Shown one piece after another: positions 1,769-59,099 of a DNA stretch of 64,000 nucleotides. The translations under genes and the position numbers were made by a program. The notes under the pieces are model-generated. The model saw only the letters and a list, made by a program, of their open reading frames with translations. It made no database searches and was not told where the DNA came from. Every line of letters begins with the position of its first letter. Within the stretch, counting starts at the first letter, position 1. Origin of the DNA: Lepidodermella squamata (lineage: Eukaryota > Animalia > Gastrotricha); NCBI GenBank assembly GCA_047495785.1, contig JBLDXI010000030.1, forward strand, positions 434,001 through 498,000, read 5' to 3'.

Positions 1769-2167
1769 CCGTCTATACCGATTTAGTTTTGCCTTGTAAT
1801 AATGAACCCACAACCCCTGCCTTATGAACGGGACCCGGCCTTTATTTCGGCCCTGCTCTATATTTATGGAAATTAACTTTGAGCAACCGTATGCAACGGT
1901 TTTCAAAGCAAAATTACTAGAAATTGCCCTCTTTCACATCTTTTTAAGCTTCGATAGAATGTGAGGTGAAGTGGATTAAACTGCTCATTCGCAGGAGTTT
2001 GAACCCTTGCGAAGCTGCGGGGTAGCACTTGAGACGCATGCACATAATGTGGCCCCTGCCTTGTAATCGGGCCCTGCACTGTATTTTCTTAAACGATTGA
2101 CCTCGAGGCTCTGCCTTATGAACGGGACTACCCTTTAGGTTCTGCCTTGTAAATCGGAGTATACGAA
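1769..2167. mobile_element. Degenerate Tc1/mariner(pogo)-type MITE
   Basis: Left end TA|CCGTCTATACCGATTTA is an imperfect inverted match to the right end TAAATCGGAGTATACG. The internal direct repeat GCCTTATGAACGGGAC occurs at ~1819 and ~2114. Layout resembles the MITE at 33055. Confidence 0.4.
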
Positions 2168-2698
2168 ACATCCAACTTATTCTTGGGGAGTCGCTTTCAC
2201 AGGCGCGATGATAGAGGTTCGAAGCACATTCTCAGGCCTGCCTACGGTACGGCTCTGCGCGCGTTACTACCGGTCAGCTCATTTTGTAAATAAATCTAAG
2301 AGTGAGGTCCGAATTTCACGTCGGCTTTTACACCAAAATGCAGTAAATCGAATTCTCTTTCGTTTGAATATGAGCCGCGATAAGTCAAAACCGTAAGCTT
2401 ACGCAATTACGAGAAATTTTCACCAGAGCGCAAAGAAGCCTTTGCTCATCACCTTGCATGTGAAATTTTTCAAATTATTGGTTATGTTTTTCAGGCCGTT
2501 ATCCAGTGCTACAACAGCTTGACAGATGAAATGCGTTGCATTCCAGTAAACTAAAATAGCGATTCCTGAACTTTCGTGCTCTGAATTGTCGGACTGGAAA
2601 ATTGTTCGATGATCATATATTTTTTACATATATTGCAGCTAATTTTACTGTAACACTGAGTCAATTTCTCATGTTTTATGTCGTATTTTATCGAAATG

Positions 2699-26639: not shown

Positions 26640-29449
26640 CTATGGTTTGATCGAACAAAGCGCCCTCGAATCGAAAAAGCATACGCTCGTCACAACTGCG
26701 CCTAGACTGTTCAAAACCAAGCCTGAACAAAAGGAAATATGCAAAAATTGCAACAAAAGTTATGTAATCTCACAGGAAATGTCCAGGCTAACTGGAGGCT
26801 CGCCTTCATCCCAGGTCAGAACTGTGCTATTCGTCGATATTTCTTCGTCATCAAGCCAGCTGAATGCTGCGGTAAAATCAATGATGAGCATAGAATCATT
26901 GTATTTTGCCAAGCATACTCACATTTAACCACCGGACGATTCGCGCCGACGTATATGAGGCTTACTGAATTTGCTTTCATGAGAGCTATCGCTTGGGCAT
27001 ATGATTCCTTTGTTTTGAGGATCAGCATTGTCGAGCCCTTTGAACTACAAACTGCTTGATTGTCATTCCAACTCAAAGCTGAGCTCGGTGAGATTGTCAC
27101 GACTCCGGCCTGTTTGCTGAACAATTATCATTGAGTCACCAAAATGAGTAGGGTCTTACGGCGGTTTGGCAAGCAGACTCGTTCGCCATTCTATCTGAGC
27201 AAGGAATTGCCATGTAACCTGACCAGTCCGCATCAGATGCCAGTGCGATACCTGCAAAAGAACCCGGATTCAGAGTTCACCAGAATAAAAATCGCCGATC
27301 AACCGATCAAGATGGCACTTACATTCGCCGAGTGGCGCTGGGTCGCCAGGAGAGTACCAGCCAGGCGTTGTCTCTGAGGCATTAGCGCTGTCGGCAAAAT
27401 CCCATACTAAACGCGTTCCGTCCAGCCATTTCAACACGGTGTGACCGCCGATCCACAAATCCGTGTCGGCGAGAGCATAAGAAGACGCAGCCTCGAATTC
27501 AGCTTTAGTCTTCATTTCCGCAATCGTGCCTCCCTGCTGCCGGCACGCACGAATGGCTTCAACAAAGCTCATTTCACTTTCCGTATAGAAGAAAGGCTGT
27601 GAAGTGGCTATTGTAAAACGCTATAGTTCACTCGGGAAATGCAACTGTTGCTAACTTACCGCCGCAATCGGAGCCTTTGTATCCGCTAGGACAGTTGCAC
27701 GAACTGATGTTTCCAGTGGTCCACCATTCTGGCAATTCAGCAGGCATGGAGCTGAGAATAAAACGAGTCATTTTATATCGCAATTAGGATCGCATCAGGA
27801 AATCACGAAGAACACACCTATCTCGCAATAAGTTCCATTGTAGCCGGGCAAGCAGTCGCACTTTCGCGTTACAGGGTTGTAAATGCCGTTTACACATTGA
27901 AGCTGTAAAGAAATTCAGTAACAAACATAGGATCGCCTTAATCCTTTTATTTACCTTCTGAGCTATATCAGCCAAACAGCTTGCGTAGTTACTGGTGAAA
28001 TCACGAGACGCAGAATATACGAGAAGCTATGAGAAAGAGTAAAGCCTGGGCTGATATCCGAAATTTGTGACTCACTCGTTGGGATCCCGCAGGGCATTGA
28101 TTGTAACACTGATCGGCACTGCCTGTTCGACACCAGGCAGCGTACTGAAAAAGGAACGAAAATCGAAAAAATTGAATAAACTTGGCAACAGATTTAACAG
28201 CCTATTATAACAGTCCTTCTGTTCAGATTAAACTCGGAGCTAAAAGAGAAGAGTTAGATAAAGATTTTCTTAATTCGAATTCGAAATGGGGCAGTGAAAC
28301 CTCTTCTCGCAGCACCGACGCAGTACCAACGAGCAATTCTCCCTCACAATTTAGTTTCAATATTAACAAGCATAAACAACTTGAGTATTATTTTCTGTGA
28401 AAAAATCAGTAATCGATTTGGCTTGAGGCATGTTCTAACCCATGATAAGCAATTAGCTTTGTTGCGGTAGACCCCAGTTGAAAACTCTTCGGTTTCATTG
28501 GCGATGCAACGCGATGTGCTCAATCGGCATGCAGTGAATTGGCGTGTGACAGTGTCAAAGCAGCGGATGTGTGGTTTCACAGAGTCAGCCTGTTCGCCTG
28601 AAGCGGAAATATGATTAATAATTTGTGTTAGAACACGATGAACGCACCGCTGATACTTCCTAGGCATGTGTCCAAGCTCGGCAGTCCCGTCGATTTTTTC
28701 GACTGAATTTACAATAACACAATCGATATATAACTCCTAGAAACAATAGCTTTACCGAATTAGTCGGACAGGGAAGTTCGCTAGGGATGCAGGTGACGAA
28801 TTGTTGAGCTGAATTGAAACATGTGTCGAATTTTCGATTCTGTAAAAAAAAATTCTACATAAAGTCGACAGTTCGGGTTTGATTCCTACCGGAAAAGCGT
28901 TAACATCTGATGTACAATTCGCTAAATTTGTCTTAAACGGATAATAGCCGTTGTAAGAGTTTCCGATCTAACACAAAAAATAAAATAAAATTTGAATAGT
29001 GAATGTGAAAGACGAGCTAAGCTATTAACTGTTAACCCAACTTAATTGATCAAAATACTAACCATGATTTCGCTTATTTTGCTGCATCCAGGTGAGCCCG
29101 GTCGGCATGTTGCTGCGTAAGTATCATATCTGTAGCACAATCTAGCAGTCTATAAGAAAATAACTCAATCAAAAAGCTGAATCGAAGTATTAATAAAAAC
29201 CAACCGCCTTTAAACAACTGCTTTGATCAGTATTGCTGCTTCCAACCTATCAACATAATAAAGAAAAGGAGTACTCATTCATGGTGTTCAGCAAACTTGA
29301 TATTCGCGCAATTGCTGACAACCGCTTGGTAGTTCGCGGCAAACGGTGAATGTATCATCGAATTGCGAGAAGCATCGAGCCCACTCTCCGCAAAGCCCCC
29401 ACTCGCTGGCTGCTAAGACCGATATCATAATTGCCAGTGAACCTCGCAT
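26640..29449 (-). pseudogene. Copy 2 of the 4-Cys/EGF/CTLD gene, frameshifted
   Basis: Exon-by-exon paralog of copy 1 but lacks 10 nt (CACGCAAGTT) in the second EGF exon at ~27720. Confidence 0.7.
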
Positions 29450-34274: not shown

Positions 34275-37200
34275 TCATGCCTCGGTCGAGCAGAGTGCTT
34301 CTGATAAAACTGTGCAATCGTCCTGTCCACCTTTACTGTTGCTGGTGAGACGCATGCCTGGGCAAAAGAGAGCAAATCATTTAATGATGTGGTCAGCTGA
34401 GGTAACTTACAGGGAAAATCAAAACTGAACTTAGGATTCCCGTCATCCCAAGTGATAACTGAGCTATCTGTAGGAACCGCTTCGCCATCGAGCCAGCTGA
34501 AAGCTATATTCAAAGAATAATGAGCTACTTATGCATTGATCCACCTCGCCTAAATCACACCCACCTGTAACATCAGTACGATTTGCGCCAACGTAGATGA
34601 CGTCAAACGACTGCTCCTCCATCAGGGCAATCGCTTGAGCATAAGCTTCTTTTGTTTTGAGATTCAGCATCGCCGAGCCCGTAAAGGCACACCCCGCGCC
34701 GCTCTCGAGCCAATTCAAGTTCGATGGGAAGGCTGAAATGACACCATCCTGTAAGTGGCGGATGATTAGTTATAGTTATAGACATAATATAAGAGGAATA
34801 TTAAAGAGACTCACCGCGTCTTGGCAAACAGTAATGTTTATGATTGAATCAGCGCCTGAAATCGTCTTAAAACCGGACCATAAAGCATCGCGTGCCAGTA
34901 CGACGCCTGGTATGAAAACAGAAGAAATCATTAGCAGTAGCGCAGGATGAGTAGCGCCTAAATGAAAGGCTAGAGTTGATTACTTCGGTTCATGCTACTT
35001 CACTCTACTTGAGTTGGAAAGCTCAGCTGTATGAGAATTATTATGAGAACTATCAAATATTTTGAGAAGTGAAGCGAAGAAAGCGGGCACAGCTACGTGT
35101 TAGATTTATAATCTGACTGCAGTTTGCGAGGGTCTACGTTGTATTAGGTTCTTACATCCTTTATAGCCCACAGCTGGTTCACTTTGATAGTACCAGCCAG
35201 GCGTTGTTCTCGAGTCATCGCTGTGAGCGCCAATCCAGGCCCTAAAACAGACACTACCGCTGCCTGAAATTCGTCCTTCGACTCGATTTTTGCAAGCACG
35301 CCACCCTGCTGCCGACACGCCCGAACGGCGTCAGTATAACCCATGGGACCACCGGAAGCGCGGAAAAACCTTTTAGAGACCACTGAATGGTAAGTATGAA
35401 AATTGATATTTGCAATAAGCAATGGAAACTCTGCATTGCCAACTTACCGCTACAATTGGAACCTTTGAATCCACTAGCACAGTTGCACGCGCTGCTGTTT
35501 CCAGTCACCACACACGTCCCGCCATTCAGGCAATTCAATGTACATATAACTGCAAGCGGAATAATGTGGATTATGGCAGTGACAAACGCAGGGGAAAACA
35601 TACTCTGTTCACAATATGTCCCGTTGTAGCCGGAAAAACAGTCGCAAACCCTTGTCACGGGATTGTAAATGCCGTTTGCACATTGGAGCTGTAAATCAAA
35701 TACAATTCAATCTCGCAGCATAGCAGAGCCATGGCAATTTACCTTTTGAGCCAGGTCAGCCAAGCAGCTAGCGTAGTTGCTAGCGAATCCACGAGACGCA
35801 GAATATATGAGAAGCTATGAAAAAATGTGCAGGTTAAGGCTCAGGTCAGCATTATTGACTCACTTGTGGGGATCCCGCAGGGCATTGACTGTAACACTGA
35901 TCGGTACTGCCTGTTCGACACCATGCAGCGTACTGAATAATGATATGTTATAAGAGACTTGAAAGGAAGGACTTGAAAATAATATTATCGCTCAAGCAGG
36001 GGTTGAAGTACGGGGGAGGGGATGAGAGGTATCGTTCGGCAGCCCAAACTGGAAATACCCCCAAAGCACCACAGGGGGACCCTTTGGCCCGAAAATACCC
36101 CATAGTTCGGGGATCCTAGTTCGCCGTTCGCCGCGCACTGGTTTTACTAGCTAGTAGGTTTTACTAGCCACCCGCGTCCAACCCTCGAAATTTGGCTACC
36201 AAATCTCAAATTTCAAGCTTTCTGGCTATTTTATAGCTCTTAAGGTTCATTTTTACCCAACATGGCGACCGGCCACCACTAATTTAATAAACACTTGTTA
36301 TCGCTAATCGATTTCGCTTATTGAAGCATTTTCTCACCCAGGATAAGCAATTAGCTTTGTTTCGGTAGACGCCAGTAGAAAACTCTTCGGTTTCATTGGC
36401 GATGCAACGCGATATGCTCAATCGGCAGGCAGTGAATTGCCGAGTGACAGCGTTGAAGCAGCGGATATGCGGTTTCACAGTGTCTGCATGCTCGCCTTTA
36501 ATAGAGATTCAATACAAATCTTGTGTTTATGGGAGGCACTTACTGCTTATACTTCGCAGGCACGTGTCCAAGCTTATTAGTCCAATCACGTTTTTGACCT
36601 GAGCTTGCGTTAATGATTATTAACAGCAAAACTTGACAAATCAGTTAGTTTACCGAATTACTCGGACAGGGAAGTCCGCTAGGAACGCAGGTCACAAATT
36701 GTTGAGCTGAGTTGAAACATGCGTCGAATTTTCGATTCTGTTAGTAACAGAAGTTTCTGAATAAAGTTAACAAGTTCAGCTTTGCATCTTACCGGAAAAG
36801 AACTGAAATCCGAAGTACAATTCGCTAAATTGGTCTTCAATGGATAATATCCATTGTAAGAGTTACCGATCTGAAACGATCAAGCTGTTAACAAAGCCTA
36901 ACCGAGCAAACAGTTAACCATGATTTCGGTAGTTTTACTACATCCAGGCGAGCCAGGTCGGCATGTTGCCGCGTAAGTGTCATATCTGTAGCACAATCTA
37001 GCAGTCTATACAGGCAAAATTGTGTCAAAAGCTGACTCGAATAAACAATAAAAGCCTACCGCCTTTAAACAAGAGCTTTGATCAGCAATACTGCTTCCAA
37101 CCTGAGATGAGATTATATAGAGAATAAATTATCGCATCCTTTACTTTCAACCAACTTGATATTCGCGCAATTGATGGCAGCCGCTCGGTAGTCCGCGGCA

Positions 37201-37308
37201 ATCCGTAAATTTGTCATCGAATTGTGAGAAGCAGCGAACCCACTCGCTGCAAAGCCCTGATTCGACAGTCGATAATATCAAGATCACAATCGCAAAAGAA
37301 TTTCGCAT
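34275..37308 (-). pseudogene. Copy 3 of the 4-Cys/EGF/CTLD gene, probably disabled
   Basis: Same exon series as copy 1. CTLD1 has a frameshift at ~35245 and has lost the WKWLDG segment. The nested TE block starts ~25 bp upstream of its ATG. Confidence 0.65.
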
Positions 37309-38216
37309 TTCACCTCAAAGGGAAGTAAATTAAAATGCCGGGGGGAACCCCCATACTGCCACCGTTTGTGAGTTGACAAGTTGTTTGTTTGTTTGTATGT
37401 CGCCAGTGTGCGCACAATCTATGCACGCCTTCCCAAGAAGAAAAATCTTACTTAAATTACTAAGATCTTACTAAGTGTCTTTGTTAGCTTCTTAGTAAGA
37501 CGGGAAGCAGAAATAACTAAGATCTTAGTAGCTGGGTTTTCTGATCGAAAAGTTGAGACAAATCGATTTGCATCTTCAAAACACTCGGCTTTGCTTTACA
37601 AAATGATGATCTTTGCTCATCAAACTCGTGCAACAAACTTGACAAACTTGTTTGTCAAGGATGCAGAAAACTGCGGCTGATTTAGCTGCCTAATCAGTCA
37701 TAAAAAATATTTAGTTTTATCCACAAATTTATATTATTAAATTTTTTTTAATAAAATTATTTTTCATAAAACCTTGACACTTGGCGCGTTTTTGTTCCAT
37801 ACACGTCGCCTTTTTGTGTTTTTTACGCGCACCGCGCGATTTTGGCTAGAACTCATCCTATAGATTATGTACATGGATCTTTTGAGCTTTGATGCTGGCG
37901 CTGTTCCAGCAAGAAATCTTCGCGTGATTTCATGCCAACAACTAATATGCTGTTGTGTTATTTAATATTTTCCAGCTCTCACGACCGTTTCTTGGGATTA
38001 CAGTTGAATTTTTCACTTGATTGCTTGTTACATTAGATCAATTTCGAGCAATGCTGCCGCTGCTATACTTATACGTCTGTATTGTATATATTTCATTCCC
38101 GTGTATAGATTGCGCATTATCATCGTTCATTGGTTATTTGACTCATCTTGCTGCCGGAATCGTTTTGAATTGATAATTTCTTCACATCTGCGCGTTTGGC
38201 TGGATTATACTGCTGT

Positions 38217-41200
38217 ATGAGTAACGACAAGGAAAATAATTCGGTCTACTACTACGGTTCGGCTAAGCGATTTAAACCTGCCGATAATGCGTATAATGCT
38301 GGTGATGACGACGAATTTGAAGAGGCTACTGACGAATTCGACTATGACGCTGATTTCGAAGACAATTCGCTCGGCAATGTCGACGAGGCTGATAATGACG
38401 TTAATGACGATGGTGTGATGGATGATGATTTCACTGACTCTCAGGTCTCTGGTGATAACGGCGGTGGCGTAGTAGAACATCATCAGGTTCTCGCTGTGAT
38501 CGACCAGCCTGCTGAAGTTAACCCTTTTGCTGAAGTCGAAACGCAAATTCCAACTCACGTCTCGCCCGTTCCGGTGGTGGCTGATGAACATGTTGCACCT
38601 AATATTGAAGCGTTGCCTGTTGTCATGCTTGGCGGAAGACCATCAAATGTAGTCCTCGATGTCGAAACGAGCAGCGAGTCGGAAGAAGACGAAGCTTGGC
38701 GCAAAGATGGCATGTCATCTATATCTACGGCATCGTCTGAGTACGATTGGGAGGCGTTGGATGAAATGATTGGCGAATCATATCATAATAATAATGAGCA
38801 AGCAAACGCTGATGTCTACAATCCTGCGCAGCGTTACGACGATGATGGCAGTGATGATGATTACGACTTCAACTATGAACGTCAAGTTCGCCAGGTAACA
38901 ATTGCTGAGGGCAATGACGGCAACTGGGACGTCATTGATTACCTGCGAGATCTTGAAGTTGGCCACAACCTGCCGAGATCAACTTTGGAGCGCGTAATGT
39001 ACGGCTTGGTTCAAGCCGCTAAAAATCATAAGCAATTGCCTTCTATTCCGTCGACGTACTACAAATATGCGAAGAAAGTGCAGGAGAAAGGTTTACTTGT
39101 TGAGCCGATTGAGACCAAGCGTTTCTGCACCCGTTGCTCAGTCGAGTTACCTGCTGATTCAAAATGCCCAGCGTGTGAGAGAATTCTGTCGCCTGGCGCT
39201 CGTGGCGAAGTTATTGTTCCTAATTTATTGTGGCAATTGGCCGTTGTTTTGAAGGATTTCATCGTTGCTGGTCTTATATGCATTGATAAAGGTAAGCTGT
39301 TATATATTCTTTGCTTATAATTACCGTCAAGTCTAATACATATTTGTTTTAAAGAGTTTTCCTTGCAATTCGATTTACTCGTCGATGGTGCTGGTCTATC
39401 GTTCAAGAGCGGCGGCCAGCAAGTGTGGCTACTTCTAGCGAATCTAACAGATCTACCGTTGTTTGCGAGGTTCAAAGTTGAAAACCAACTCCTACTGGGC
39501 AGCTTTCAAGCGCCTGTGAAACCCGATGCAGTCTGGTTTCTCGATTTTTGCCTCAGTCGAACTGTGCGACCTGTCATCCGGGCTTATCATACCATCCGCT
39601 ACAGCAACAATACCATTGCGACATTGAAGCTTGACATGCGTGCCTTCATCGCCGACGTCATGGCCCGGCTGCCTTGCCTCAACATGGGCAACTACAGGGA
39701 GTCCGTAAAGTCGAGGCAATATAAATATGTAGCATAGTACATTACATAGCAAGGGAAAAATCGATAATCTTGGTTATTTTCATCGATCGTGATATAATAA
39801 TAATATGACTGTGAGAAAGACAGAGGCACTGAGCACTGCATGGCCGATCAGAGAATCCACTGTCACAAAGGAACGTACTGCTCTGAATACAAGAGAAGCA
39901 AAAAATGAAGGGACCAAAAAGACGTTTTTTCTTGCGTTTTCTTCAATACTGAAGATTATACTCTCCCCATTCCGTATGAATTTGCGGAATGAAAGATGCG
40001 CGCATAAGAATTTCCAAGCGTATGTAATCGTAGTGCCCACGCGAGAAAAAATATATGAATTATCCTCAAGAAACGACCATATACACATACTTTTATCAAA
40101 AACGCATTGCCGCGATTTTCTTCTTGTCTATAAAAGATGACAGAGAGGTAGCTTCTAGAGCTTCCAGGCTTGATTGTTCCGGCCAGTCTTTGTTGGACCA
40201 CAATCATGGATAAATACAAGGATTGTGGTCACATGGATAAATAAAGTAGGCTTCTGCTGTCGTTCGTGGATCGATTCCTATTCGAAAACTTGCAGCTTGC
40301 TCTGACTCCCTAACCAGTTTGATCTCTATCGCTAAAAGTATCAAGTTCAAGGACGCAAGGACAGTGAGATTTAAGACGCATCTCCGGCAGGTTGGGTGCT
40401 GGATAGTCGAGTCGTACCTGCTAAGGCAGTAGTACTCAAAGTCTGCCCCGCGGGGAGGGATTCAGGGTCATGGCGCGAGAATCAGCATATTTTAGGATAT
40501 TTTCAGCCAAAATTACGGTAAAATATCGTTAGCTGAAGCTCGCTTCGCTCACAGGTGTAGCTAAACTCACGCTTTCTGGAGTCTAATGTGAAATGCTTGA
40601 GTGATTTTTTCTAATTATTGGCTAATGAGAAAATAAGAAGAACAACATTTTTACGTGAATCCAAGTTGTGACCCGTGGGGAATAGGAATAGGGCGGAAAT
40701 AGGACTTCAGCAGTTTTAGCAGAGAGCGAAGTACCACCAGGGATGGTAGGAGTCATTCCTACCAGTTCAATCGGTTCGCAAAGTCGAAGACCAATGATTT
40801 TCAACATCTTAGCCACTTCTGCTGTCCTACTTCGCTCTCAGGTTGAAGGAAGCAACCTTTTTACCTCAGTAAATCCGCTTTGGAAGATAAATTCCAAAGC
40901 TCGTCACGCGTATCGCATACGATTATTCATGCTGCAAGAGTAATTGGACGAGTCTAACACGACGGAGCGAACGAACAATTCATACAAATTGGTGGTTTCA
41001 AGGTTGAAAACGCTTAATAAATGAAAACCCACTGGCGGGATTTTGAAATCCTACGGTGCTCGGTCAGATTACTCCGCGAGTAATCTTTCTGAGAATTTTC
41101 AACCCATTTCACCGTGCATTTAATTATTATTTCAATGAAAACCAGTCCTGGGTGAACAATTGCCCGCAGGACACACAATTTTCCGATGCCATTTGTTCAG

Positions 41201-43729
41201 CGAATGAAATATCAAGAATTCCCACGGTAAATTGCTGCATCCTTCATTGCAGAGGAAAACAAGCCAATAAACGCGGGTATTTACCGCATTGAATTTTGAG
41301 AAACTGCGTTAAGTTGTTGCAAACGCTACGTATTCCAGTTCAAAAAGAATAAGTTCACATTTTACCCAGCATACTCCTTATTATTATATCCTAATCCATA
41401 CAAAAGACGCCTTATCGATTTTTTCAGCGCGCTTGTTTTTTTTAGCAAAATATGCAGATATGTTCTAAAGTGCTGCACAAAATTTCGAGGTAAAAACCTG
41501 GCCCCTTTGCGAACCGCACGGTAGAATTCCCGTTACAAGGAGATTAATGTTTTTTGTAGTAATTCTTATACTTTCACCGAAGGAAATCTGAAAATACACG
41601 GTGAAAGTAACGGACGAAACCAATTTTCATGACTTCACCAGCTATTTCCATTAGGTTTGAAAGTATTTCTGTGATCATCGGATGTGTTCACGGTAAAAAT
41701 CGTTTAAACTTGGCCATCCACGAAGATGAGATGCAACAAATGAGTTGACCGTGTACAATTAATTAATTCAAAGTGGAACGCTTGGAACCAAGTGGTATTT
41801 GGGACAAAAACTCATTCCATCCTCATTCCATCTTCTTTAATCAACTTTTAAAATTTCCTTTGGTGAAAATTTTAAGCTTATTAACAAAATCACTTAGGCT
41901 ACAAAAAAGAATGAATCTACCGTCATGACTAGAATGATATCGCTGTTTTCCGGTGAGAATTCGGTAAAAGCAACCTGTTTTTCATGGAGTTCGCCTGGTT
42001 CGTACTTACATTATTATTATTATACGATCCAGAAAAAATGCTAGATTATCGATTTTTCCCTTGCTATATAATGTACTATGCTATATATTTATATTGCCTC
42101 TATGACTTTACGGACTCCCTGTATAACACCGAGTGTGGCTGTTTCATGTGCCGTCAGCGAGGCCTGTACGCGTGTGGTGCGTGGCGCTACCCTTATATTC
42201 CTAATGGCGATCAGCTGCTGCGTTCCAATAACGAAATAACAGAAACAGCTGCCATGATTACCAGCAACGCCATAGTATCGCACAATAACATCAACGGGCC
42301 TAATCCTATATCTGAGTTTGGCCAAGTGCCGCGATGCGTAGTAGTCGACCATCAACACTGTCAAGAAGAAGGAACCTTTGAAGATTTCACCCGCTCAGTA
42401 ACGACTGGTCGTCAAAATGATCCTGCTCCTGTAACTAAACACTGCCAACAAGCTGTTGCCGTTCTATTACCAACTATTCGATTACCTGGCGATCTGGCAT
42501 CGCTCGTATTCAAGCCAGTTTTCGGCGCTGAGGTGCTTACGATTTGGCATGCACGAAATAAGAAGCTATTCTACGGCTACATTGCGCCATTTGTGTTCGC
42601 CCATTCGCATTTGATGCCAGATTCGTATTTTCTGCACCTGGTTCTAATGTTTTCCGCTTTTCGCATGCTACTTGAATTTGAGCTCGAAAATGAAACACAA
42701 CGTATGCATCAACTGCTGATTGCTCATCGCCTTATGGACGAGTTTCGCTTCACCCTTCCTCGCCTCCACGGTGGTATCGCGGCTGAAAAATACAATCCAC
42801 ACCAGGCCGGCCATCTGGTCAAGTGCTCGTCTCGATTCGGGCACATGGACGAGTATTCTTCCTATGTTATGGAGGATGCGATTGGCAAATTCAAGCAATG
42901 GTTTAATGGAACTCGCGGTCAGATCAGGCAAATGATAAACGCCTTCCACCACCGTCAGCTCACGGCTAAACGGCACCTTGTCGTACCAGAATACGAACTG
43001 AAGAATGAACTGGCCTTTAAGCAGCTTGATAAAGATGCCAGACAATTTATCAAGTCATTTGCGGAGCGCCGCGGTGAATTTAAGATTTTTACTTCTGTTA
43101 TCTACAAGCGGACGAGGTATAACGGGCGGTGGTTGAGGCGCGGCGCCCCTCGTGAACACCCACGAAGCTTTGCCATCGAAGCAGAAGATAGCGTAATTAA
43201 AGAAAATTACGCGGTCGAGGTTTACGGCTTTCTGAAATTTACAAACGAAGACGCACCACTGGCGATAGTTAAGCGATTGGACGAACACCCGAATGCCACT
43301 GGCCGCGGTGTGATTCTTGACCGTGTTGCGGCCATCCAGCGGCGTTTGAACTCGGCGAACGAGCCTGTTGACGAAGAAGAACGGCTGCTGGCAGAGCGTT
43401 CTGGTCGACGCGCCCGAATTGTTGGCAAAATGCGCAAGGACCGGCCCCTGCCGCCAATCGAGGACGACCCGTATTTCAAGGATGACGACAACACCGCTTC
43501 GAACAGTTGCCGGCGTATGGCCTCGCTAATTCAAACGTCAACGTCCGAATGCGGCCTGCTTAAATCGATTTTATTTTCCTATGCTTTTGTTGACGTAGAT
43601 GCCGAGGCGAACGCCTTTGAATTTTTGCCCCTCGACAGGTTTAGGCGGAAATTAATTTTAATCCCTAGTCCCGAAAATCCTTCCGTTCATATAGGTGTCT
43701 ATTGGACCCCCTCGGCCGAGTACCATTAG
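38217..43729 (+). CDS. EnSpm-type DDE transposase (~1006 aa reconstructed), interrupted by insertion
   Basis: 38217-39291 + intron + 39355-39694 + 42124-43729 is one frame. Motifs: CTRC..CPAC finger, VDG..KS..W..LP..R..N.LL.G..KP, ADVMAR..LNMGNY|NTECGCFMC, VDHQH, NPHQAGHL, SSYVME. Confidence 0.88.
39695..42121. mobile_element. Tc1/mariner-type non-autonomous element, 2427 bp
   Basis: TA|CAGGGAGTCCGTAAAGTC...GACTTTACGGACTCCCTG|TA; ~110-bp TIRs; TA TSD at 39693-94 and 42122-23; no recognisable intact transposase inside. Confidence 0.92.
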
Positions 43730-43999
43730 TTTTATTAATTTTTAATTCGACTTAGTTTAGCCAAATTTTCTACTGATCTCTTGAAAGATCAACGTTTTTT
43801 TTACCCGTCGAACGTCGCTTTTTTCTTACCAAAATTTGCAACCCGCTGAATTTAATCAATTTTCGGCTGGGTTGATATGTTACTATTGATTATTTTTTGA
43901 TAAGTGAAATTTCCAAAGTTTTCCAAAGTACCATCTAATTTTGTAATCGACTATATTTCCCAATTGTGTCTAGGTTATTGTTTGTTGTTTTTCTCCATA

Positions 44000-44872
44000 A
44001 TGAACGCCTTCAACGAAGATGATATAAATGCGCCCGTCCTCGCCGCGCCGCCGGGCATACGCGGCCAGCAGCCGCAAATCGCTCACATCGCTGAAATCGT
44101 TCGACAAGTCGAACCCGAGGCTGCCGCAGCAGCTGCTGCTGGTGGTCCTAACGTAAATGTTTTGTTAATAGCGATTACTCTTTTCAGGTGTTTATTTTTT
44201 TCAGAACAACCTGTTGGCACGTGAATTGAGGGCCATTCGGCGTCAGCTGGCCCAGCTGCTGCGCCATCAGAATGCCGCTCAAGCAGTTTGTGCATAATAT
44301 AATGTTTACCTATCACGTTTAACGATTGTTTCTTTCAATAGCCGGCCGAGCCTGCAATTAATTTGGATCATCAACACGTAGTGAGTTGAAATATTTATCG
44401 AGCGCCGACGCGAGTTTGAGATATAACATTTGTTTAGATCTACAAGGGCGTGGATATTACAGCATGGGCGGCTGACAACTTGCCACTACACAAAGATCCC
44501 AACACCGTGGCCAGGTACCTAGCGGAAGGGCTCTTCGGTGTAAGTAAGCTCAAACGAAGGATATTGGAGCTTAAGCGTCGCCGCGCCGACGGCCGAAAGG
44601 CTATGAAGGCCTCAAAAGTGGCTGCATTCAAAAGTAAGTTGGCACAGCTACACGTATAGTTTTATCGTGTTTTTTATTTAATTTGTTTATTTTCGATATC
44701 AGCCTACCTGCAACGCCTCTACCAGGGCCACAACTGGCAGCGGCTGTGGCGCTCGCTAAGTCGATCTGTCAACCAGCACGGACTTGACTTGAAATCCGGC
44801 AAAGTGCAGCCCTACACCTTGGCCAACCCGCTGCTTGTTCGTCAGCGTGCCGATGATGCGATCGAGGAATGA
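44000..44872 (+). CDS. Second transposon gene, BEN-domain-like protein (multi-exon)
   Basis: Splice 44633/44703 gives VARYLAEGLFGVSKLKRRIL..RKAMKASKVAAFK|TYLQRLYQGHNWQRLWRSLSRSVNQHGLD, which fits the BEN helical pattern by eye. The middle exons are uncertain. Confidence 0.6.
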
Positions 44873-46854
44873 GAGGATCTTCGTGACTTGTTATTATTAT
44901 TGTTTTCGTTAAATTTTGATAGCAAAATCAGCTTCAACATTTAGCAATTGAACATTCAGTGATTTAGCATATATTTGCAATCTCAAAAATCCCAAAAAAA
45001 GTCTTATTTCTTTTATACCTACCGTAACTTGATCAATGTTACGGTAGCAGTCGGCCTGTGATTTTTATACTTTTTATATATACACATTTTTTTGTATTCA
45101 AATCTTTCTTTTTTTACCCGGTCTGCAAAACTCGAGTCTCGGCAAGTTAACATTGTTTTTGCCTGTTTCTATTTTCAAGCTTTGTAGGTTTTTAACAAAT
45201 TGAATGATAGCCTTTAACGGATGAACAGTGATCTATAATGTAAGTCCTGATTTAAATGACCGCAGATTAAATGACCGATTAAAAATAAAATCCCATTTCA
45301 GATCGGTCTTTAGCAGTCCAGTTAATTTGACTACTTTGCAACAAGTTGAGTTTACAAACGTTTGATAGTCGATAATGTCAAAATTAATGTATATTGTTTG
45401 AATTTCAGAAAGTTGGTCGCCGTGCGATGCCAGGCTGATCTTCTGTGGAAGTTACCTCTACGCTCCACGTGTTGCATTATTGTTCAAGGTGCGAATTTAA
45501 TTAATCAAATCTGATCTAGTATTGCGTCTCTACTTGAATTTCAAGGGCCCTTTCGACATGCCTATTTTCGAGTCTTCTCATGAAAGCTGTTTGTCTGCCA
45601 CTCTGAATAACCAGCCGAAAGTCGACGTTATCAAGTAGGTTCACAACAATTTATTCCTCGAGATTTTTCACCTGTTTCAACTTCACCTTTATTAGGTATG
45701 TGAGCGAGGCGTATATACAAGGTGATAAATGCGATATAGCCGCGAAAAATTCCTCTACGACTTAGCATAGCAGATGTCGATCGAATTCGAGCAAACCCAT
45801 CTGTACACTCTATACCGCCGGGAAAACTCGTCACTCATACTCGTTTTTTCCTCAGTCTCTGCTTTTTCTACTCTCTTTCCAGCGCGTTTACTATGAATGT
45901 TACATCATATGTGTTTAATTTTTCTTATTTATTTTTGGTGAAGTGCGACATTATTAGTAAAAGTAAAACTACCGGTGGACCTTACAGACTTCCAAAAACT
46001 TGCACCTAGTGATATAGTTAGATGAATAGAGGGGGACGAGTAGGATAGAATGGGACCTAAACCCGGTGCTGCTACCCAGTAAGGACCTAGTAAGATCTTA
46101 CTAAGATCGGCGTTACTTCTTACCAAGATCCTACTAAGATCTTATGAGGACCTACTATGACGATAGCTTGCTCCTAATACGATCTTAGTAAGAAGGCACC
46201 AAAGACTCTTAGTAAGATCTTAGTAAGTCGGTTTTTTCTTTGGGTTTCGCGCACGCTGTTTATTATATCAAATAGTTTTGGCTTTTGGGTCTAAATGCGA
46301 TTGCTGATATTCTTGCGTGGTTATATGACGATTGAGCAACGACAATTCGGCAAAAAAAGAAATGAAAGTTCTTTGTGATTTTTGAGACGTCCCATTCGTT
46401 GAAGGCCATGGGTCCGGAATGAGCACTCTTAGGGTCGCTTGTTGGGGTCTCTTGAGGACAGCTCGGTAGCGATTGGTGCAGTCTTGCTGACATTCCCAAT
46501 CTACCACTTTTGGCTTTTGTAACACGATGAAGTCGTCGGCCACCGTTGGGGCAGGGCGTCATTGATAAATCGTGGTCGACCCGGGTGGAGATCTAACTCA
46601 TGCCCATCGATCTTGACGCTCAATGCCCAGCAGACAGCTATCCACTGAACTACTGTGTGCTCAATTCCACAATATTTGTTTTATTCGATCGAAAACGACA
46701 ACTCGGCAAACGGCAGTGAAAATCCAACATACCCTTGAGCGACAATTTGGCAGAAGACACCACCCGTGCCGCCAGCCGCCAGTGTGCGCACAGTCTATGC
46801 ACGCCTGTCGTCTACTCCACTAATTATTCAGTTTTGGCTTTTTGATCTAAAACT

Positions 46855-48010
46855 AGTTAACCACCCTTTACATTACAGCCGTATCGTACTGGGAGCAAGC
46901 TACGTAACGTCGTTACGTAGCTTGCTCCCGATGCTGTGCTCCCCCAGAGCCATTTTTGCGAACCAAACAGTGCCCTTCGGATTGACCAAAGGCTGTAGGT
47001 ACAAACAATCCTTCGGAGCATCTTCCGGAATGTGCGACAGATACTCAAACCAGGTCGTAATGAGGCATCGATCTCGATCAGCAATCGCATAGTAACGAAC
47101 CTTGTGAGCAGTAACATTAGGCTGTTTAATGTTACAGGTAGTCGTCTTGCTAGGTGGGACAGTCAGCTCCCAATACCGCCCGACCTCGTCATCACCCACC
47201 TCGATAAACCACTGCCGTAGTTCGCGATGTTCACACACAGCACGTAGCGCTCCGTAAAGACCGATTTGGAAAAGAAGGGTGCGGACCAGAACAAACGGAG
47301 AATGGTGACCCAGAGCCCCGATGTCCCACAAGTAAGCCTCCATATCACGAGAAATCACCTCAGCCTTCTGACCAGGTCGCAAAACACCGGCAACATGGCG
47401 CTCACGCAAAACTTCATCCAAAGTACGACGAACCTGAGAAAAACGTGGATCACGACGGAAATCAAAATCTCGGTCATTTTCTCGAAGATGACGCTGAAGG
47501 CCTTCGACAAGTTCGAGAACTGTTATACCAGGATAAGCCGTACCATCTTCCTTCAACACCTCGAATACGAATCTGGAAATTTGGTTGTCCAGCATTTCAT
47601 CAGACATCGTTTCGACAGAAAAGACGGCAAAAATTTCATCGAATAATTGCGCTTTTTCAGCAGCAGAATTGTGTTCATCGCGCCAATGTTGAAATCGATT
47701 TGCCACCTTTCGCTTCAATTCACCGCCAGTCACGAAATTCGCACGCGAAACACCAGCAGAAGAACTTGCTTTTTCAGGAAGCACCTTCAAATTTCGAATA
47801 CCTACTAAATTACCATTACTTAAAAAAACGCAAACAAAAGGACAAAAATAACCTGACAAATCCATGAAAATTTGATGCGCGCACAAGAACCAAAAATGCA
47901 GCAATAAACAAATTCAAAAGCTCTCTTAGGACGACCATTGTGCGCATTTATTACGCAACATCAACACAACAACAGCGTTATATCACACAACTGAGTGTTA
48001 TTCTAAGTTA
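46855..48010 (-). mobile_element. Crypton-type element, internally truncated
   Basis: Contains a DUF3504-type recombinase ORF and is bounded by a candidate 5-bp direct repeat AGTTA (46855-59, 48006-10). No TIR. Confidence 0.6.
46900..47865 (-). CDS. Crypton (DUF3504/KIAA1958/ZMYM-like) tyrosine recombinase lacking the C-terminal catalytic part
   Basis: F..W, RFVFEVLKEDGTAYPGITV..GLQRHL, LW..GALG..SP..L, LRAVCEHREL, SKT, RC....EYLS, LYLQP, WF...LGEHSI. Stops before the HxxR/H/Y motifs. Confidence 0.85.
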   Translation of the reverse strand: MDLSGYFCPFVCVFLSNGNLVGIRNLKVLPEKASSSAGVSRANFVTGGELKRKVANRFQHWRDEHNSAAEKAQLFDEIFAVFSVETMSDEMLDNQISRFVFEVLKEDGTAYPGITVLELVEGLQRHLRENDRDFDFRRDPRFSQVRRTLDEVLRERHVAGVLRPGQKAEVISRDMEAYLWDIGALGHHSPFVLVRTLLFQIGLYGALRAVCEHRELRQWFIEVGDDEVGRYWELTVPPSKTTTCNIKQPNVTAHKVRYYAIADRDRCLITTWFEYLSHIPEDAPKDCLYLQPLVNPKGTVWFAKMALGEHSIGSKLRNDVT

Positions 48011-49532
48011 GGCGAGTAACAAGAGTCCGTCCTACAACTACTACGCCCCCGAGCACTGCTGTCGCTTGCCAGGCGAGTTTGTGTGGCGCATTCAACGCCG
48101 CTATGAGGTAACCTTGGGAGGTAACGCCGTTCGCTAAGTAGTGTCGATGCGTGAGGTTATGGAAAGGTTGCTGTAAATATTGGTCTTGGCATGCATAGAG
48201 ATTACAGCAGGCTCGATTCAGGCCTAACCCGATAGTTTACAGGTAGAACTACCATCATTGTTCTCGTCAGTCTCAAAGGTTCCCCCCGGCGCTACTGCGG
48301 CAGCTTTGCTGCTGCTGTTGCCAATAAAATACAGATTATCTATCAAATAAATCTGAGCTCCATAGGTTCAAATAATTAGCAATTTTTGAAATGATGCCCC
48401 GAAGATCTTTTATCTAGAATTATTTTTAAAGCAAAACCAACGTGAAAGCAAGTACGGAAGTGTAATGCTTCCAAACTCGATGCATGATTATATTAATAGG
48501 AAATAGGGAATAGGTTTGGGCAACATGAAAATAATAACTCTTTATTATTTCCTCGTTTTTAAGACGCCTGTTGTTTACGTCTTGAAAAGTGTCAGAACAT
48601 AATGATTTTCATTTTTCAAAATCGCGTGGATGTTTTCGTGTGCTCATTGATTTAACCTTGATCCGGAAAACAAAGCAAGCCTAGTCAACCGTGGCGATTT
48701 GACCAATTTGGAATTTTTTTATTCAAAATCCACTCAGATATCATGCAAATTTGCGGAAAAGTGATGTATCGCAAAACTGAAAAATGTATGTTTTGCCTAA
48801 AACCTGGTGACTTTGCCTGCCGTTAGCTGCTGCATGAATAAAGCGAAAAAATGTCGGCGATAAAAGTGGCTTGGAATTGAGCTGATCCTCTCTATCCATC
48901 TTCAAAAAAGTTTCTAAAGTATAAAAAGAATTAATGCTATGAAGCCGAATAACGACGATTATAGCAGAATATATCGAGAGATAAATATTTATTAAAAATG
49001 TGGACTGCCTAATTCAGTAATAATTAGGTTGCCTTGCGACACAGTGAGTATACATTATATTTTAATATTATTTGTGTTTTTTGTGGTTGAAATAGATATG
49101 GACTGAATCTTTAAGAATCGATTTTGTAATGTCAGAAAGTAGCTGTTTTGGTAATTGCAATTCCTTAAAAAGTTTCAATGTTTGTTTAGTTATAGTACCA
49201 CGGCTACCCAGGTAGAGTCCTTGCACGGTAACTTCGTCCAGCTTCCATTGTTCACAGATGTCGTTTGCACAGGGTTCTTAAATCTATTTTTACTAGCTAT
49301 CTATTTTTATTTTTATCTATCTATTTTTATGTTTATTTATCTGTGATGCTATTTTTGCACATCAAAGTTCGCTCGTAAATGCTGGTCTTCGAGGAGCACT
49401 TTCTTATTTTTCTTCGAGTCTCATTGTTTTTGAATGAGATTCCCGCGTGCATTTCGATTCAGGCGAAACGTGCTTGGAAGTTATAATCAGAAAGATATAG
49501 CATAAACAAGGTTGTCCTGTATTTGTAGTGAA

Positions 49533-53642: not shown

Positions 53643-56107
53643 TTATATAGCTTCAAATGTGCTCTTTGCACCAGATCTGGAGATCAGACCAGTTCTCAGT
53701 GGTGTGATGCCGATTGGATGAGACAAATTTCCACCGGGTGATTCTTGTTGTAGTTTGGATTTCACGAGAATCATGGACATCATTGTTTCCATTGAGACTG
53801 CGACAGATGCAACTGCCGCTATCGGCATTGCCGAATCTTCCCCTAAAATGAAGAACATGAACACAGATCCGCCAATGATGGTCAACTGCAAGTAGACGGC
53901 AATTCCTAGCGATTTCGCTTCCATTCGATTATTGATATCAGCGGAGCGATTTGTTGACAACGAGTAGGATGCAAATCCATTTCTAAGAAGCAGTATGATT
54001 TGTGGAATCAGAATAAGCGCTCGAACTGCCGTTAATCCTGAACTTTCACCATCGAATTGACAGGCGAAAGCGAATGGTTCGAAAATGACAGTCTCGTCGA
54101 TATCGCCAGGGAAAGGCTGCAAATCTTTGCGAATCGTTACGAACCGCCAATTCAAAATCAAGAGCAGCAAAAGGGCGAAATTAATCAAAAACCACGCGCT
54201 TGAAATCAGCAGGATTATGATGGATCTAGATGGACGGCGATTCAACATAGAGATTTTGAATGTTAACCCATGATTGAGCACTGTATAACCGACTATCGTC
54301 AGTACTGAGAATGCGTCGCAATGATTGGCAATCGTCTGATCACCTGATGCATTGAGCGGCAGAGCTAGGGAAACAGCGTTTAAGAGAGAGCAGCCGACTA
54401 TGACAATGATTGACGGGAAATCTCTCAAATTCGAAAGTTTCGAATTTCTCTTTAAATTTGTAATGAAAAGAAGAACTAAGAGAACAGCAAGTAAGCACAT
54501 TGTTGCCATGCTGATTCCAAATAGAATCCGTGAAAACGCCGCAGGAAAGAGTGGGACTTCAATATCTTGAAAAAGAGGGCCATCTAACGGGGGCTTTCCA
54601 TCAATAGTTAGCCACTTGAGCTTGGCTGAAATAACTTCTAAAGGTTTTGCATTTCCGCTACTGTAGGTCGCGAATTGTCGTTGTCTGGTTTGAATCGGCG
54701 TCAGAAATTCAGCTTGAGCAAAGGCCCAGATTGAATATCCCTTCGAATTGAGAGCTGTCTCTCTTTCAAACTTGTAGATCCCATTGAGGCCTGAAAATTT
54801 GTGCGTTGAATACATTGCGTCGACCAACGCCGATTCTGAAACGTTTTCCAGCGAGTTTGATTGTGCTATCTTATCAGCTGTTTTCAGAACCTCGCCACCA
54901 AACAGTGTTATTTCATAGGCGTGGAACCTATCCGACAAGAACATTGCCGGTATGCCACCTGCTATTCTTGAGTTAAGCTCTTTCGTAAACTGCTGTTCGT
55001 TGAGACCAGTGACATCAGTCATGTTTTGATCAAATTCGAACCTGCCACCCAGGTAGATGAGACTCCTGACTATTTCAGCTATCATGGCTTTGTTACACCA
55101 GGATTCCATGAAACTTGGTATAACCCCACCCATTCCAATGCCACCGTAGCTCTCCATGATGAAAACATAAGCTGGGCCATGGAAGCCATATTTGTACAAC
55201 AAACATGCTATATCCATGGTGAAGATGTTGAGAATGATGATTCGAGGCTTGTTGCGAGCCATATCAGCAAACTGAGCCTCAGTCTCTGCCATTGTAGCCT
55301 CTCGCCAGATTTTGCCGTACCAAACCAGAGTGATGTTGTTCCGTTCAAGCTCCTCAATCAATTCAGGGTCGATAAGGTTATAGTATGCTTTGAACTCTGA
55401 CAGAATCGCGACCCTTGAATAAAACCAAATCATACGATAATGATTAGTGACAGCAGCTGCACTTACCTTGTCCAATTGAAGAACCTCAATAGGGGAGCTA
55501 TCGCAAAATGTTTCCTTGCCGAGACTTCTTGAAGGCCGAACAATGAGCCGTATCTCGTCCGATCACGATTTACCGCTGATGATTTGAACAAGCTTTGAAT
55601 CGTGAACATTCCAAAGTGCTTCATCGCTTCGCCCATCAGTTGCTCGAGAGCATTACCGGCGATTCCCACACTCAGAATCATCGGTAACAAGTCGCGTTTG
55701 ATTTCGTTCACTTGAAGCCTTCGGATCAATGAATCGATTGCAATATAGTCTGTGCCCATGTCATTCAGCAGTTCGATCGCCACTTCGTAGTTGGGCAGCC
55801 AGCCCTTGTCCAGTTTCAGCCTATCCAAGGCAAGTTGAATTCCCTTAGTCAGCATGGGTCCTTCTGGGAAAATTGGATGCCAGTAATTGATGAGAGCTAA
55901 CAGCTTGATAACTGGTTTTTGGGTTCTGTTCGAAAGTAAAGACGAGTTTGAAGATATCACAAAACATGGCATGGGATCTTGCAGAGCAGCAATTGGCTGC
56001 AACGCACTGTTCGACGATCTGATACTGTCGAAGTCTGATTGGCTGATGGAGGCGATGCCAAGAATCGAAGCGCAGCAAACCCATAGGGACAAGACGATAT
56101 CAAGCAT
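53643..56107 (-). CDS. Class C GPCR, GABA-B-receptor-like (Venus flytrap + 7TM), 2 exons
   Basis: Signal peptide; IQLALD..WLPNYEV, R.RY..LF, FNWTR|VAI; P.DGP linker without a Cys-rich domain; seven hydrophobic helices; EAKSLGIAVY at TM6. Confidence 0.85.
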
Positions 56108-56571: not shown

Positions 56572-59099
56572 CTACTTTTCAGCCATTGAGCCGCGAGGCG
56601 CAGACAAGCTTACCGTTGACTGGCGGCGATTATGATCAGCCGGTGCCACGGGTATGTAGGCCGACGATTTTCTTGGGCCTGACCCGGCGATGGACAAATT
56701 GGACGGCGGTGTGACCTGGCCCAGTTTCACTACAACCAAAGGTACGCAAGCTGCTGGGGTAATGGCAAGGACCGAAGCGGCAACAATGGCCATCGATAGA
56801 TCCCTTCCGAGAATCACAACTATCAAAATTGTGCCAACAATGATGAGCAACTGAAGGTAAATCCCGGTTCCTAAAGCTTTCAATTCTCTCTTGTTCATCC
56901 AATTCTGGCTTGACTTCTTCGTCTCAGAGTATGTGGCGAATCCAATGCGTAACATGGCGAGTAAATTACGTGCCAACAAGATTCCTATTACTATTAAATA
57001 TCCAATCTCATCCCCAGAGAACTTGCATTTATAGACGTATGGCTCGTAGATTAGAACTTCATCGACGTCACCAGGATAAGGAGCTAGAAAGTCTTTCACC
57101 AGCTCAAATTTCCATCTTATCAGGAGAATCGTTAAAAGTACGAATTCGCAGATCGGCAAAATCACGCAGAATATTATCGTTATTCGTGATCTGATAGATT
57201 TCCCTTTCAGCATCAAGTATTTTAGGCAAGAGCCGCAATTCAATAGGATGTAACCCGAGGTCGAAATCACAGCGAAAGTCGTGCATCTTTCAGCTATTTT
57301 CATGCTGTCGGGGGCGAAATCTCGAGGTAACGTGAACGGAACTGCACTTAGCAGTATTCCGCCTGTGAGGATCAAGTAGTTTCCGGCCTCGAAATCACTT
57401 AGTCTAGCGAAACTTGTTGGCAGCGTGTCAGACGACCTTTGGCTCAACTTCATCGCGGAAATGACAGCTAAAACAGCTACGATAGTCAAAACCTCAATAA
57501 TGCCGATTGATGTTAGGATCCAAGGAATGTGAGGCTGAAACAGCAGAACTTCGACTTGCTTCAGCAAAGGCCTATCCAGTGGAGGTAAACCATTTTGAGT
57601 ATACCATTTCAATCTACTTGGATCAACCACTAGAGGAAAGGTTTCTCCGCTGCTGTAGGTCGCAAATTGTCGCTGTCGCGTTTGCGTTGGAGTGAGAAAT
57701 TCAGCTTGAGCGAATGCCCATATTGAATATCCCTTCGAATTGAGAGCTGTCTCTCTTTCAAACTTGTAGATCCCATTGAGACCTGAAAATTTGGGCGTTG
57801 AATACATTGCATCAATAAGACGTGATGATGAGAAGTTATCAAGAGATCCAGATTGTCCAATCATTTTATCAGCTGTTTGCAAGACTTTACCGCCGAACAA
57901 AGTCATTTCATAGGCGTGAAATCTATCCGACATGAACATGCCTGGTATGCCACCGACTATTCTTGAACTAAGTTCTTTTGTGAACTGCTGCTCGTTGAGG
58001 CCCGTGACATCAGTCATGTTTTGATCGAATTCGAACCTGCCGCCCAAGTAAATGAGACTTCTTACTATCTCAGCTATCATGGCCTTGTTACACCAGGATT
58101 GCATTGAATCAGGAATATTCGCGCTCATTCCTATGCCGCCGTAGCTCTCCATAATGAAAGCGTAAGCTGGACCATGGAAGCCGTATTTGTACAACAAGCA
58201 AGCGATATCCATAGTAAAGATGTTTAGAATGATGATGCGAGGCTTTTTACGCGCCATATCAGCAAACTGAGCCTCGGTTTCAGCCATTGGTGCTTCCCGC
58301 CAAATTTTTCCATACCAAACCAGGGTAATATTGTTTCTCTCGAGCTCCTCGATGAGCTCAGGGTCGATCAGGTTGTAATACGATTTGAATTCGGACAGAA
58401 TAGCAACCCTTAATGACAATGGAAAAATTAGCAAATATCAGTTGCTAACTTGAGATTTGAAACATACCTTGTCCAATTGAAGAACCTCATGAGAGGAGCT
58501 ATCGCGAAATGTTTCCTTGCAGAGACTTCTTGAAGGCCGAACAATGAGCCGTATCTTTTTCGATCGCGATTGACTGCCGATGACTTGTAGAGACTTTGGA
58601 TAGTGAACATTCCAAAGTGTTTCATAGCTTCTCCCATAAACAACTCGAAGGCATTTCCAACGATACCAACACTCAAAACCATTGGTAACAAACTTGGGCT
58701 AGCTTCATTTTCTTGAAGTCTTTTGACCAAAGCAGTAATTGCAAGCGTCTCAGTGCCCATATCATTGAACAGCTCTATCACGATCTCGTAGTTCGGAAGA
58801 AATCCAGGGTCTTGCTTCAGCCTATCGAGGGCTAGTTCGATACCCTTACTTAACATAGCTCCCTCCGCGAAAACGGGATGCCAATAATTGACAAGCGCCA
58901 AAATGTTCAATACACGTTTTTGAGAGCTATTCGACATGATCGTGGAATTTGATGAAATGGCATAGCACGGCATGGGTCCACGTAGCTCAGCGACTGGCTG
59001 CAGAGCCGTATTCGATGCCCGTATACTATTCAAATCAGTCGGGCAAGAACTTGTCGAGGCGAACAAAAGCAACAAGGTCAAAAAATTGGCGCAAATCAT
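56572..59099 (-). CDS. Class C GPCR, GABA-B-receptor-like, tandem paralog
   Basis: Same single intron after FNWTR; VFT, PPLDRP, 7TM with ELKALGTGIY. Confidence 0.85.

Follow-up and report, generated by a model that had tools for sequence, protein, structure and literature searches.

How did a block of about 11 kb of mobile DNA come to stand directly in front of a host gene, from how many separate insertions was it built up, and can their order still be read? These questions are raised by a 64-kb window of the Lepidodermella squamata genome (G000:C30:434001-498000), the window being the whole stretch of DNA that was analysed; positions given below without a contig are counted from its first letter. 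It belongs to an animal-type assembly of 121 Mb in 151 contigs, and C3, C4, C7, C20, C28, C33, C36, C74 and similar labels refer to contigs of this same assembly. According to the initial annotation, the block consisted of four nested transposon superfamilies: a HINE-like shell, an EnSpm-type element inside this shell, a Tc1/mariner-type element inside the latter, and a Crypton-type recombinase segment inserted separately into the shell. The sequence features that it described are all present, with small corrections of the coordinates (the block extends from 37335 to 48325, and not from 37331 to 48319). The count of four was overstated: the shell, the middle (EnSpm-type) element and the inner element with its TA duplications are true layers, and the Crypton fails as a fourth. 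We read the block as a nest of three mobile elements, stacked by successive insertions in the 5′ part of a host gene, and consider the staged history that is proposed below, taken as a whole, to be highly probable.

The three layers are separate mobile families, each with reproducible ends of its own and unrelated flanks. A search of the genome for independent copies with the same ends, a check proposed together with the four-layer description, was successful for the shell, the middle element and the inner element, and unsuccessful for the recombinase segment. The shell family amounts to about 30 copies genome-wide of about 2 kb apiece (some 31 5′ ends and 31 3′ ends were counted), at least eight of which are complete, with both ends at identical positions, unrelated flanks and no target duplication; the absence of direct repeats at the flanks of these eight copies implies that the target is left unmodified. 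The subterminal inverted repeats are conserved in all copies, and their 12-mer core has 58 occurrences genome-wide, a control having a single one. On the 3′ side the repeat lies 35-47 nt from the end of the shell and is followed by a hairpin with an 8-bp stem, placed 10 nt from the end (fold −11.4 kcal/mol, z −2.0). The 13-bp repeats, the microsatellite and the 3′ hairpin of the HINE-like shell could thus all be located. HINEs have subterminal inverted repeats of 12-15 bp, found 2-4 nt from the 5′ end and about 38-60 bp from the 3′ end, as well as a palindrome of 5-10 bp situated 8-35 bp from the 3′ terminus, and they use a TT or T-rich target without modifying it (PMC4067079). The shell resembles HINE/DINE-1-type Helentrons (Thomas et al. 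2014, PMC4067079) in the geometry of its subterminal repeats, in its 3′ palindrome, microsatellite and internal repeats, in the absence of target duplication, in its many short non-coding copies and in the foreign gene fragment that it carries as cargo. It is this structural likeness that argues for a rolling-circle mode of mobility and for the HINE label.

The middle element begins with CCCAAG, finishes with CTTTGGG, and has imperfect terminal inverted repeats of about 14 bp and, on both sides, subterminal arrays of a motif of about 17 bp. An internally deleted copy with identical ends, a 2-bp TA duplication and unrelated flanks lies at C74:433878-436302, and a solo right end is found on C3. 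Evidence for its insertion into the shell is provided by a sister of this shell, located on C36, which reads through the insertion point: there are three Ts where the window has two on one side of the element and three on the other, i.e. an exact paralogous empty site. The target duplication of the middle element is therefore 2 bp (TT), as first described. It had also been noticed that removal of this element rejoins a duplicated core of the shell. This core is an internal direct repeat of about 80 bp that the shell family has inherited; its first copy is interrupted by the middle element in the window and uninterrupted in the C36 shell. Where the two copies of the repeat can be compared on either side of the insertion, they are 97% identical (37401-37430 versus 46777-46806) and 91% identical (46274-46295 versus 46830-46851).

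The affiliation of the middle element follows mainly from its transposase, of which the exons and both halves of the interrupted gene were searched separately. The frames are open and the splice is phase-consistent; once the inner insert is removed together with one TA, a single open frame is obtained. A word-based protein search with the 534-amino-acid piece of the transposase gave nothing, and an exhaustive phmmer search brought up 88 relatives, all of them weak, with 3e-16 for the best. Ten of these relatives were scanned, and eight of them contain Transposase_21 or DUF1258 (E up to 0.001; five reach Pfam's own cut-off), the match being located just N-terminal of the region matched by the window transposase. 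The two halves of the interrupted gene are collinear on P0004: the piece before the insertion corresponds to residues 351-447 and aligns to its DG and D..PA regions, and the piece after the insertion corresponds to residues 453-718. In an alignment with eight relatives, G5, C6, C9, H226, H230 and E250 are invariant, which gives the motifs C(2)C, H(3)H and E, a signature for the EnSpm/Mirage/Chapaev group (PMC12730594). In the Atlas feature search the nearest named clusters were Plavaka and Transposase_21. The Transposase_21/DUF1258 relatives, a short target duplication (2 bp, TT here and TA at the C74 copy, for a range of 2-5 bp in the superfamily), the subterminal arrays and the presence of a second gene are likewise shared with the CMC superfamily, which comprises EnSpm/CACTA, Mirage and Chapaev (PMC12730594, PMC4079192). 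Judged from these sequence characters, the middle element belongs to the CMC group, an assignment made at the level of the group and not of a lineage within it. The second multi-exon open reading frame region has no match in Pfam; diverged relatives on C33 and C28 have kept its last exon, as well as the 3′ part of the transposase. The window holds the sole coding copy of this CMC family in the assembly.

The inner element splits the transposase of this copy, with the second catalytic D before the insertion and the C(2)C motif after it. The element starts with CAGGGAG and finishes with CTCCCTG, and its inverted repeats, of about 110 bp, are 88% identical. Five further full-length copies, 93-96% identical, have the same end bases, TA on both sides and unrelated flanks. 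When the genome was searched with the terminal 20-mers, 22 ends were found, all but one of them bordered by TA, and these ends delimit about ten elements of 1.9-3.1 kb. Reproducible ends, TA and unrelated flanks, in combination with the lack of a transposase-like open reading frame, show the inner element to be a real, independent and non-autonomous family. Its TA at 21/22 ends, its long terminal inverted repeats and its roughly ten copies with the same ends are features that it has in common with non-autonomous Tc1/mariner-type elements.

The nesting gives the order shell, then EnSpm-type element, then TA element, in agreement with the order originally put forward, and the C36 copy adds a relative date: as its site is empty, the CMC insertion is younger than the split between the window and C36 shells, which are 99.4% identical. 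We propose a history in five steps. It would begin with a non-autonomous family of the Helentron/HINE type, about 2 kb long, that already possessed the direct repeat of about 80 bp and an insert resembling a short interspersed element (SINE). One lineage of this shell would then have swapped its interior for about 1.1 kb of foreign DNA with the 5′ two-thirds of a Crypton-like recombinase gene; the junction, a 19-bp inverted duplication, would point to gene-fragment capture rather than to transposition of a Crypton. In a third step, the chimeric shell, moving as one piece, would have reached two sites at least, one here and one on C36. At this locus a coding cut-and-paste transposon of the CMC/EnSpm type would have entered the first copy of the shell's repeat, duplicating TT, and, lastly, a 2.4-kb non-coding TA element would have entered the CMC transposase gene, disabling the sole coding copy that the family has in the assembly.

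Nesting tells the order of such events and not the place where they happened. Another possibility is that a composite moved as a unit, the inner elements being in place already when the outer one moved: the CMC element could have been in the shell, or the TA element in the CMC copy, before arrival. Rolling-circle and cut-and-paste elements can carry inserts provided that their ends are intact, and all the ends are intact here. But the CMC element is absent from all other shell copies, as is the TA element from all other CMC copies. Moreover, the window has the only coding CMC copy, and a move after its disruption would need a source of transposase that is absent from the assembly. We consider movement as a composite to be improbable; the CMC element and the TA element were probably inserted in place, into a shell that was already at this locus.

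The recombinase segment is a different matter. Its open reading frame (46903-47904, minus strand, with a likely ATG at 47863-47865) was found with Pfam to contain DUF3504 (2.8e-20) and QRICH1 (3.5e-9). Both domains are characteristic of Crypton-type recombinases and of proteins derived from them, and the genome has other diverged genes of this kind, one of them (L074) with a complete catalytic tail; both facts speak for a fourth and independent mobile layer, a Crypton (a transposon with a tyrosine recombinase) that entered the shell. But a search of the genome found the segment solely inside the shell, in the window and on C36, so that both of its copies lie within the shell and neither has boundaries of its own. 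Nor does the segment interrupt the canonical interior; it substitutes for it, since canonical shell copies match up to 46909 and again from 48022 and between these points share a different interior. The gene is also incomplete. In the relatives P0089 and L074 the open reading frame runs past DUF3504 into an HxxR..GH..Y catalytic tail, and the window frame stops there: its match to them ends ahead of the catalytic part, at residue 246 of 293 for P0089 and at residue 255 of 425 for L074. The full catalytic set of Cryptons (R..HxxR..H/W..Y) is thus not present in this frame, and no match to the catalytic tail was obtained elsewhere in the block, even at E 10. Finally, the window and C36 shells are sisters on their shared shell sequence (99.44% identical, support 96/91) and are nested among canonical copies; as the C36 sister has the recombinase segment too, the segment came to the locus as part of the shell and predates the arrival there. 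The independent Crypton insertion is largely refuted by these observations, and we regard it as very unlikely.

The segment resembles Cryptons and DUF3504 derivatives in its QRICH1-type N-terminal region followed by DUF3504, with about 28% identity to relatives, but differs from Cryptons in its truncation before HxxR..H..Y, in the lack of ends or independent copies of its own, and in being cargo in another element. A protein search of the genome with the recombinase, in which all candidates were scored, gave, besides C36, a best full-length match of 31% identity and two short fragments that are 56-64% identical. In our reading the recombinase piece is cargo that the shell had captured before it came to this locus. 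At the left junction of the segment lies a perfect 19+1+19 palindrome that only the window and C36 copies have; canonical copies have the left arm only, which means that the right arm arose at the junction, as an inverted duplication of the adjoining shell sequence. Capture of gene fragments is known for Helitron-type elements. Could the recombinase-bearing shell be a fresh and still mobile capture product of a Helentron-like rolling-circle element, the 19-bp junction keeping a footprint of the capture (fold-back or template switching during replication)? We offer this as a tentative idea, and one that is rather doubtful at present. A fragment of a tyrosine recombinase is not among the captures reported for HINEs in PMC4067079.

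It may also be asked whether the recombinase-bearing copies are autonomous masters of a hybrid element, with the recombinase mobilising elements that have shell ends. The recombinase frame is open and 99% conserved between the window and C36, and a Rep/Hel partner was not found in the assembly. But this frame ends before the catalytic histidine, arginine and tyrosine, the missing part being nowhere in the block; the two recombinase bearers form the youngest tip of the shell family tree and not its root; 30 other shell copies have an unrelated interior; and the 99% conservation is accounted for by recency. A hybrid element of this sort is, in our view, extremely unlikely. Least credible of all is an assembly artefact, i.e. 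a chimeric join of repeats in a repeat-rich region of an assembly in 151 contigs, given that all junctions are exact with matching 2-bp duplications and that the interrupted sequences (transposase frame, shell repeat and C36 empty site) resume in register.

Apart from the possible movement as a composite, several observations weigh against the history of three stacked insertions and captured cargo, or against the names given to its layers. A donor of the recombinase fragment was not found in the genome at the DNA level, so that capture is deduced from the replaced interior and the junction, and not from a comparison of donor and recipient. The assembly yielded no autonomous Rep/Hel element bearing the shell's subterminal repeats, and not one of the 58 subterminal-repeat sites has any of the 41 Helitron_like_N loci within 50 kb of it; unlike HINEs (PMC4067079), the shell has in this assembly no Rep/helicase/endonuclease partner in which 11 bp or more of the subterminal repeat are identical. 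A second difference from HINEs (PMC4067079) is that the shell flanks are not T-rich and have no clear TT target, and the conserved T at each extreme end may be host or element sequence. For the middle element, the pieces of the transposase have no direct match in Pfam (PF02992 and PF06869 are the families of the group), the protein being too diverged for one. Its termini are CCC and GGG and not CA..TG or CACTA, and it duplicates 2 bp, whereas EnSpm proper duplicates 3 bp and Chapaev 3-4 bp. It lacks, in other words, the CACTA or CA..TG termini and the 3-bp duplication of EnSpm/CACTA proper, and is thus a CMC element, but not an EnSpm element in the strict sense. As for the inner element, its stop-to-stop frames are all of 115 amino acids or less and none is transposase-like; a Tc1/mariner DD(E/D) transposase is absent from it, and no partner with the same ends was found among the elements of its family, all of which (about ten) are of 1.9-3.1 kb. 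It differs from non-autonomous Tc1/mariner-type elements in that it has kept no remnant of a transposase and that the assembly gave no autonomous partner sharing its termini, and 2.4 kb is large for a non-coding derivative. Of the initial description, a TA element with independent copies inside the EnSpm-type element was borne out; the superfamily is given by TA and inverted repeats, and we keep Tc1/mariner as a default call, TA duplications being found in other lineages too, some of them CMC-like and Harbinger-like (PMC12730594).

Nested transposons are common, and the present instance is a tidy and documented one of an ordinary phenomenon. Its value is that of a clean and fully checkable example, with independent copies for each layer, one exact paralogous empty site and a readable order. 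The corrected over-count is instructive in that a recombinase domain found within another element does not on its own make a nested Crypton. For research on the pickup of gene fragments by Helitron-type elements, the inverted duplication at the capture junction could be of interest. The silencing of the CMC family's only coding copy by another transposon is a small illustration of transposons policing each other.

Table 1. Positions in the window of the components of the block and of the adjoining host exon.
Feature	Position	Strand	Remarks
Host gene, first coding exon	37147..37308	-	signal-peptide-like start; ATG at 37306-37308
Outer shell, putative non-autonomous HINE/Helentron-like element	37335..48325	+	10,991 bp with inserts, about 2.2 kb without
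5′ subterminal inverted repeat, 13 bp	37337..37349	+	2 nt from the 5′ end; holds a small G5/C5 hairpin
(GTTT)n microsatellite of the shell	37380..37396	+	also in other shell copies
Internal direct repeat of about 80 bp, first copy, left part	37401..37431	+	split by the middle element, resumes at 46247-46295
TT target-site duplication of the middle element	37430..37431 (left), 46245-46246 (right)	.	paralogous empty site on C36
Middle element, CMC (EnSpm/Mirage/Chapaev)-type DNA transposon	37432..46244	+	8,813 bp
Transposase gene of the middle element	38217..43729	+	exon 1 38217-39291; intron 39292-39354; exon 2 39355-39694 plus 42124-43729
Inner non-autonomous element, Tc1/mariner-like by its ends	39695..42121	+	2,427 bp; TA at 39693-39694 and 42122-42123
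Second multi-exon open reading frame region of the middle element	44001..44872	+	open segment 43904-44224
SINE-like repeat of about 310 bp inside the shell	46352..46659	-	head with A-box and B-box-like motifs, T-rich tail
Internal direct repeat, second copy	46777..46851	+	present in every copy of the shell family
Perfect 19+1+19 palindrome, left junction of the recombinase segment	46891..46929	.	fold −21.9 kcal/mol, z −7.1
Foreign segment with 3′-truncated Crypton-like tyrosine-recombinase gene	46910..48021	-	1,112 bp; replaces the canonical interior
3′ end module of the shell	48278..48325	+	13-bp repeat 48278-48290, hairpin 48297-48315, 10-nt tail

The SINE-like repeat, whose ends were set by alignment with two copies, has dozens of dispersed copies on many contigs that are 86-88% identical; neither ARAGORN nor Rfam called a tRNA or RNA family in it. 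It is inherited with the shell family. Two leads, one to a possible autonomous element and one to a longer parent of the shell, were rejected. A pair of shell-like ends on C7, 9.8 kb apart, encloses a retrotransposon of the kind without long terminal repeats and an AIG1 GTPase gene, and not Rep/Hel; in this locus (L076, G000:C7:2114450-2124400) the shell-like ends are diverged, with 77-80% identity, and the open reading frames are RVT_1 plus endonuclease and an AIG1-family GTPase. The canonical shell interior, tried as a route to a longer parent, was found only within the shell family, apart from a small nested repeat. The latter, at positions 364-972 of one canonical shell copy (L056, C30:1005792-1007494), has internal inverted symmetry and many dispersed copies that are 88-98% identical, and is probably a miniature inverted-repeat transposable element. 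Helitron_like_N Rep domains are present at 41 loci at least, and several groups of them (e.g. on C15, C23 and C30) score identically, which suggests recently amplified rolling-circle elements.

Two other genes with DUF3504 or a similar region may be mentioned here. The open reading frame at 991-2265 (minus strand) of L074 (G000:C7:4215342-4219085) encodes 425 amino acids with QRICH1, DUF3504 and a complete Phage_integrase-type catalytic tail, and may be a genuine Crypton recombinase. In L073 (G000:C20:1512918-1516331) a long frame combines Cys motifs like those of MYM-type zinc fingers with a poly-Q tract and, in its C-terminal region, a DUF3504-like sequence; it has the look of a ZMYM/QRICH1-type gene of the host and not of a transposon.

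The block had been placed about 25 bp upstream of the ATG of a lectin gene. The distance measured between this ATG, on the minus strand, and the shell is 26 bp, and the position was thus essentially right; the lectin identity is weakly supported, as the Lectin_C match in the downstream exons is below the cut-off (E 0.048), and only the EGF domain in these exons (2.7e-6) is solid. Expression of the gene is predicted to be altered, and probably is, by 11 kb of DNA inserted 26 bp upstream of its start codon. The first exon is matched genome-wide by more than 40 paralogous sequences, with 68-77% identity, and thus represents a large, partly tandem gene family. Two members with first exon and upstream region are found inside the window, at 24657-25001 and 29079-29449, and further ones at C4:2177454, C3:1605545 and elsewhere. 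The upstream regions, in which an empty site for the shell at this locus was sought, are only about 76% identical across the family. At the C4 paralog the left and right flanks appear contiguous, and the target bases are unreadable in this only approximate, 76%-identical site.

Elsewhere in the window, three long open frames have no Pfam match: 8798-10429 (plus strand, 543 amino acids), 53643-55475 (minus strand, 610 amino acids) and 56572-58434 (minus strand, 620 amino acids). Around the block stand host genes of an ordinary kind, among them ankyrin, trypsin and receptor genes.

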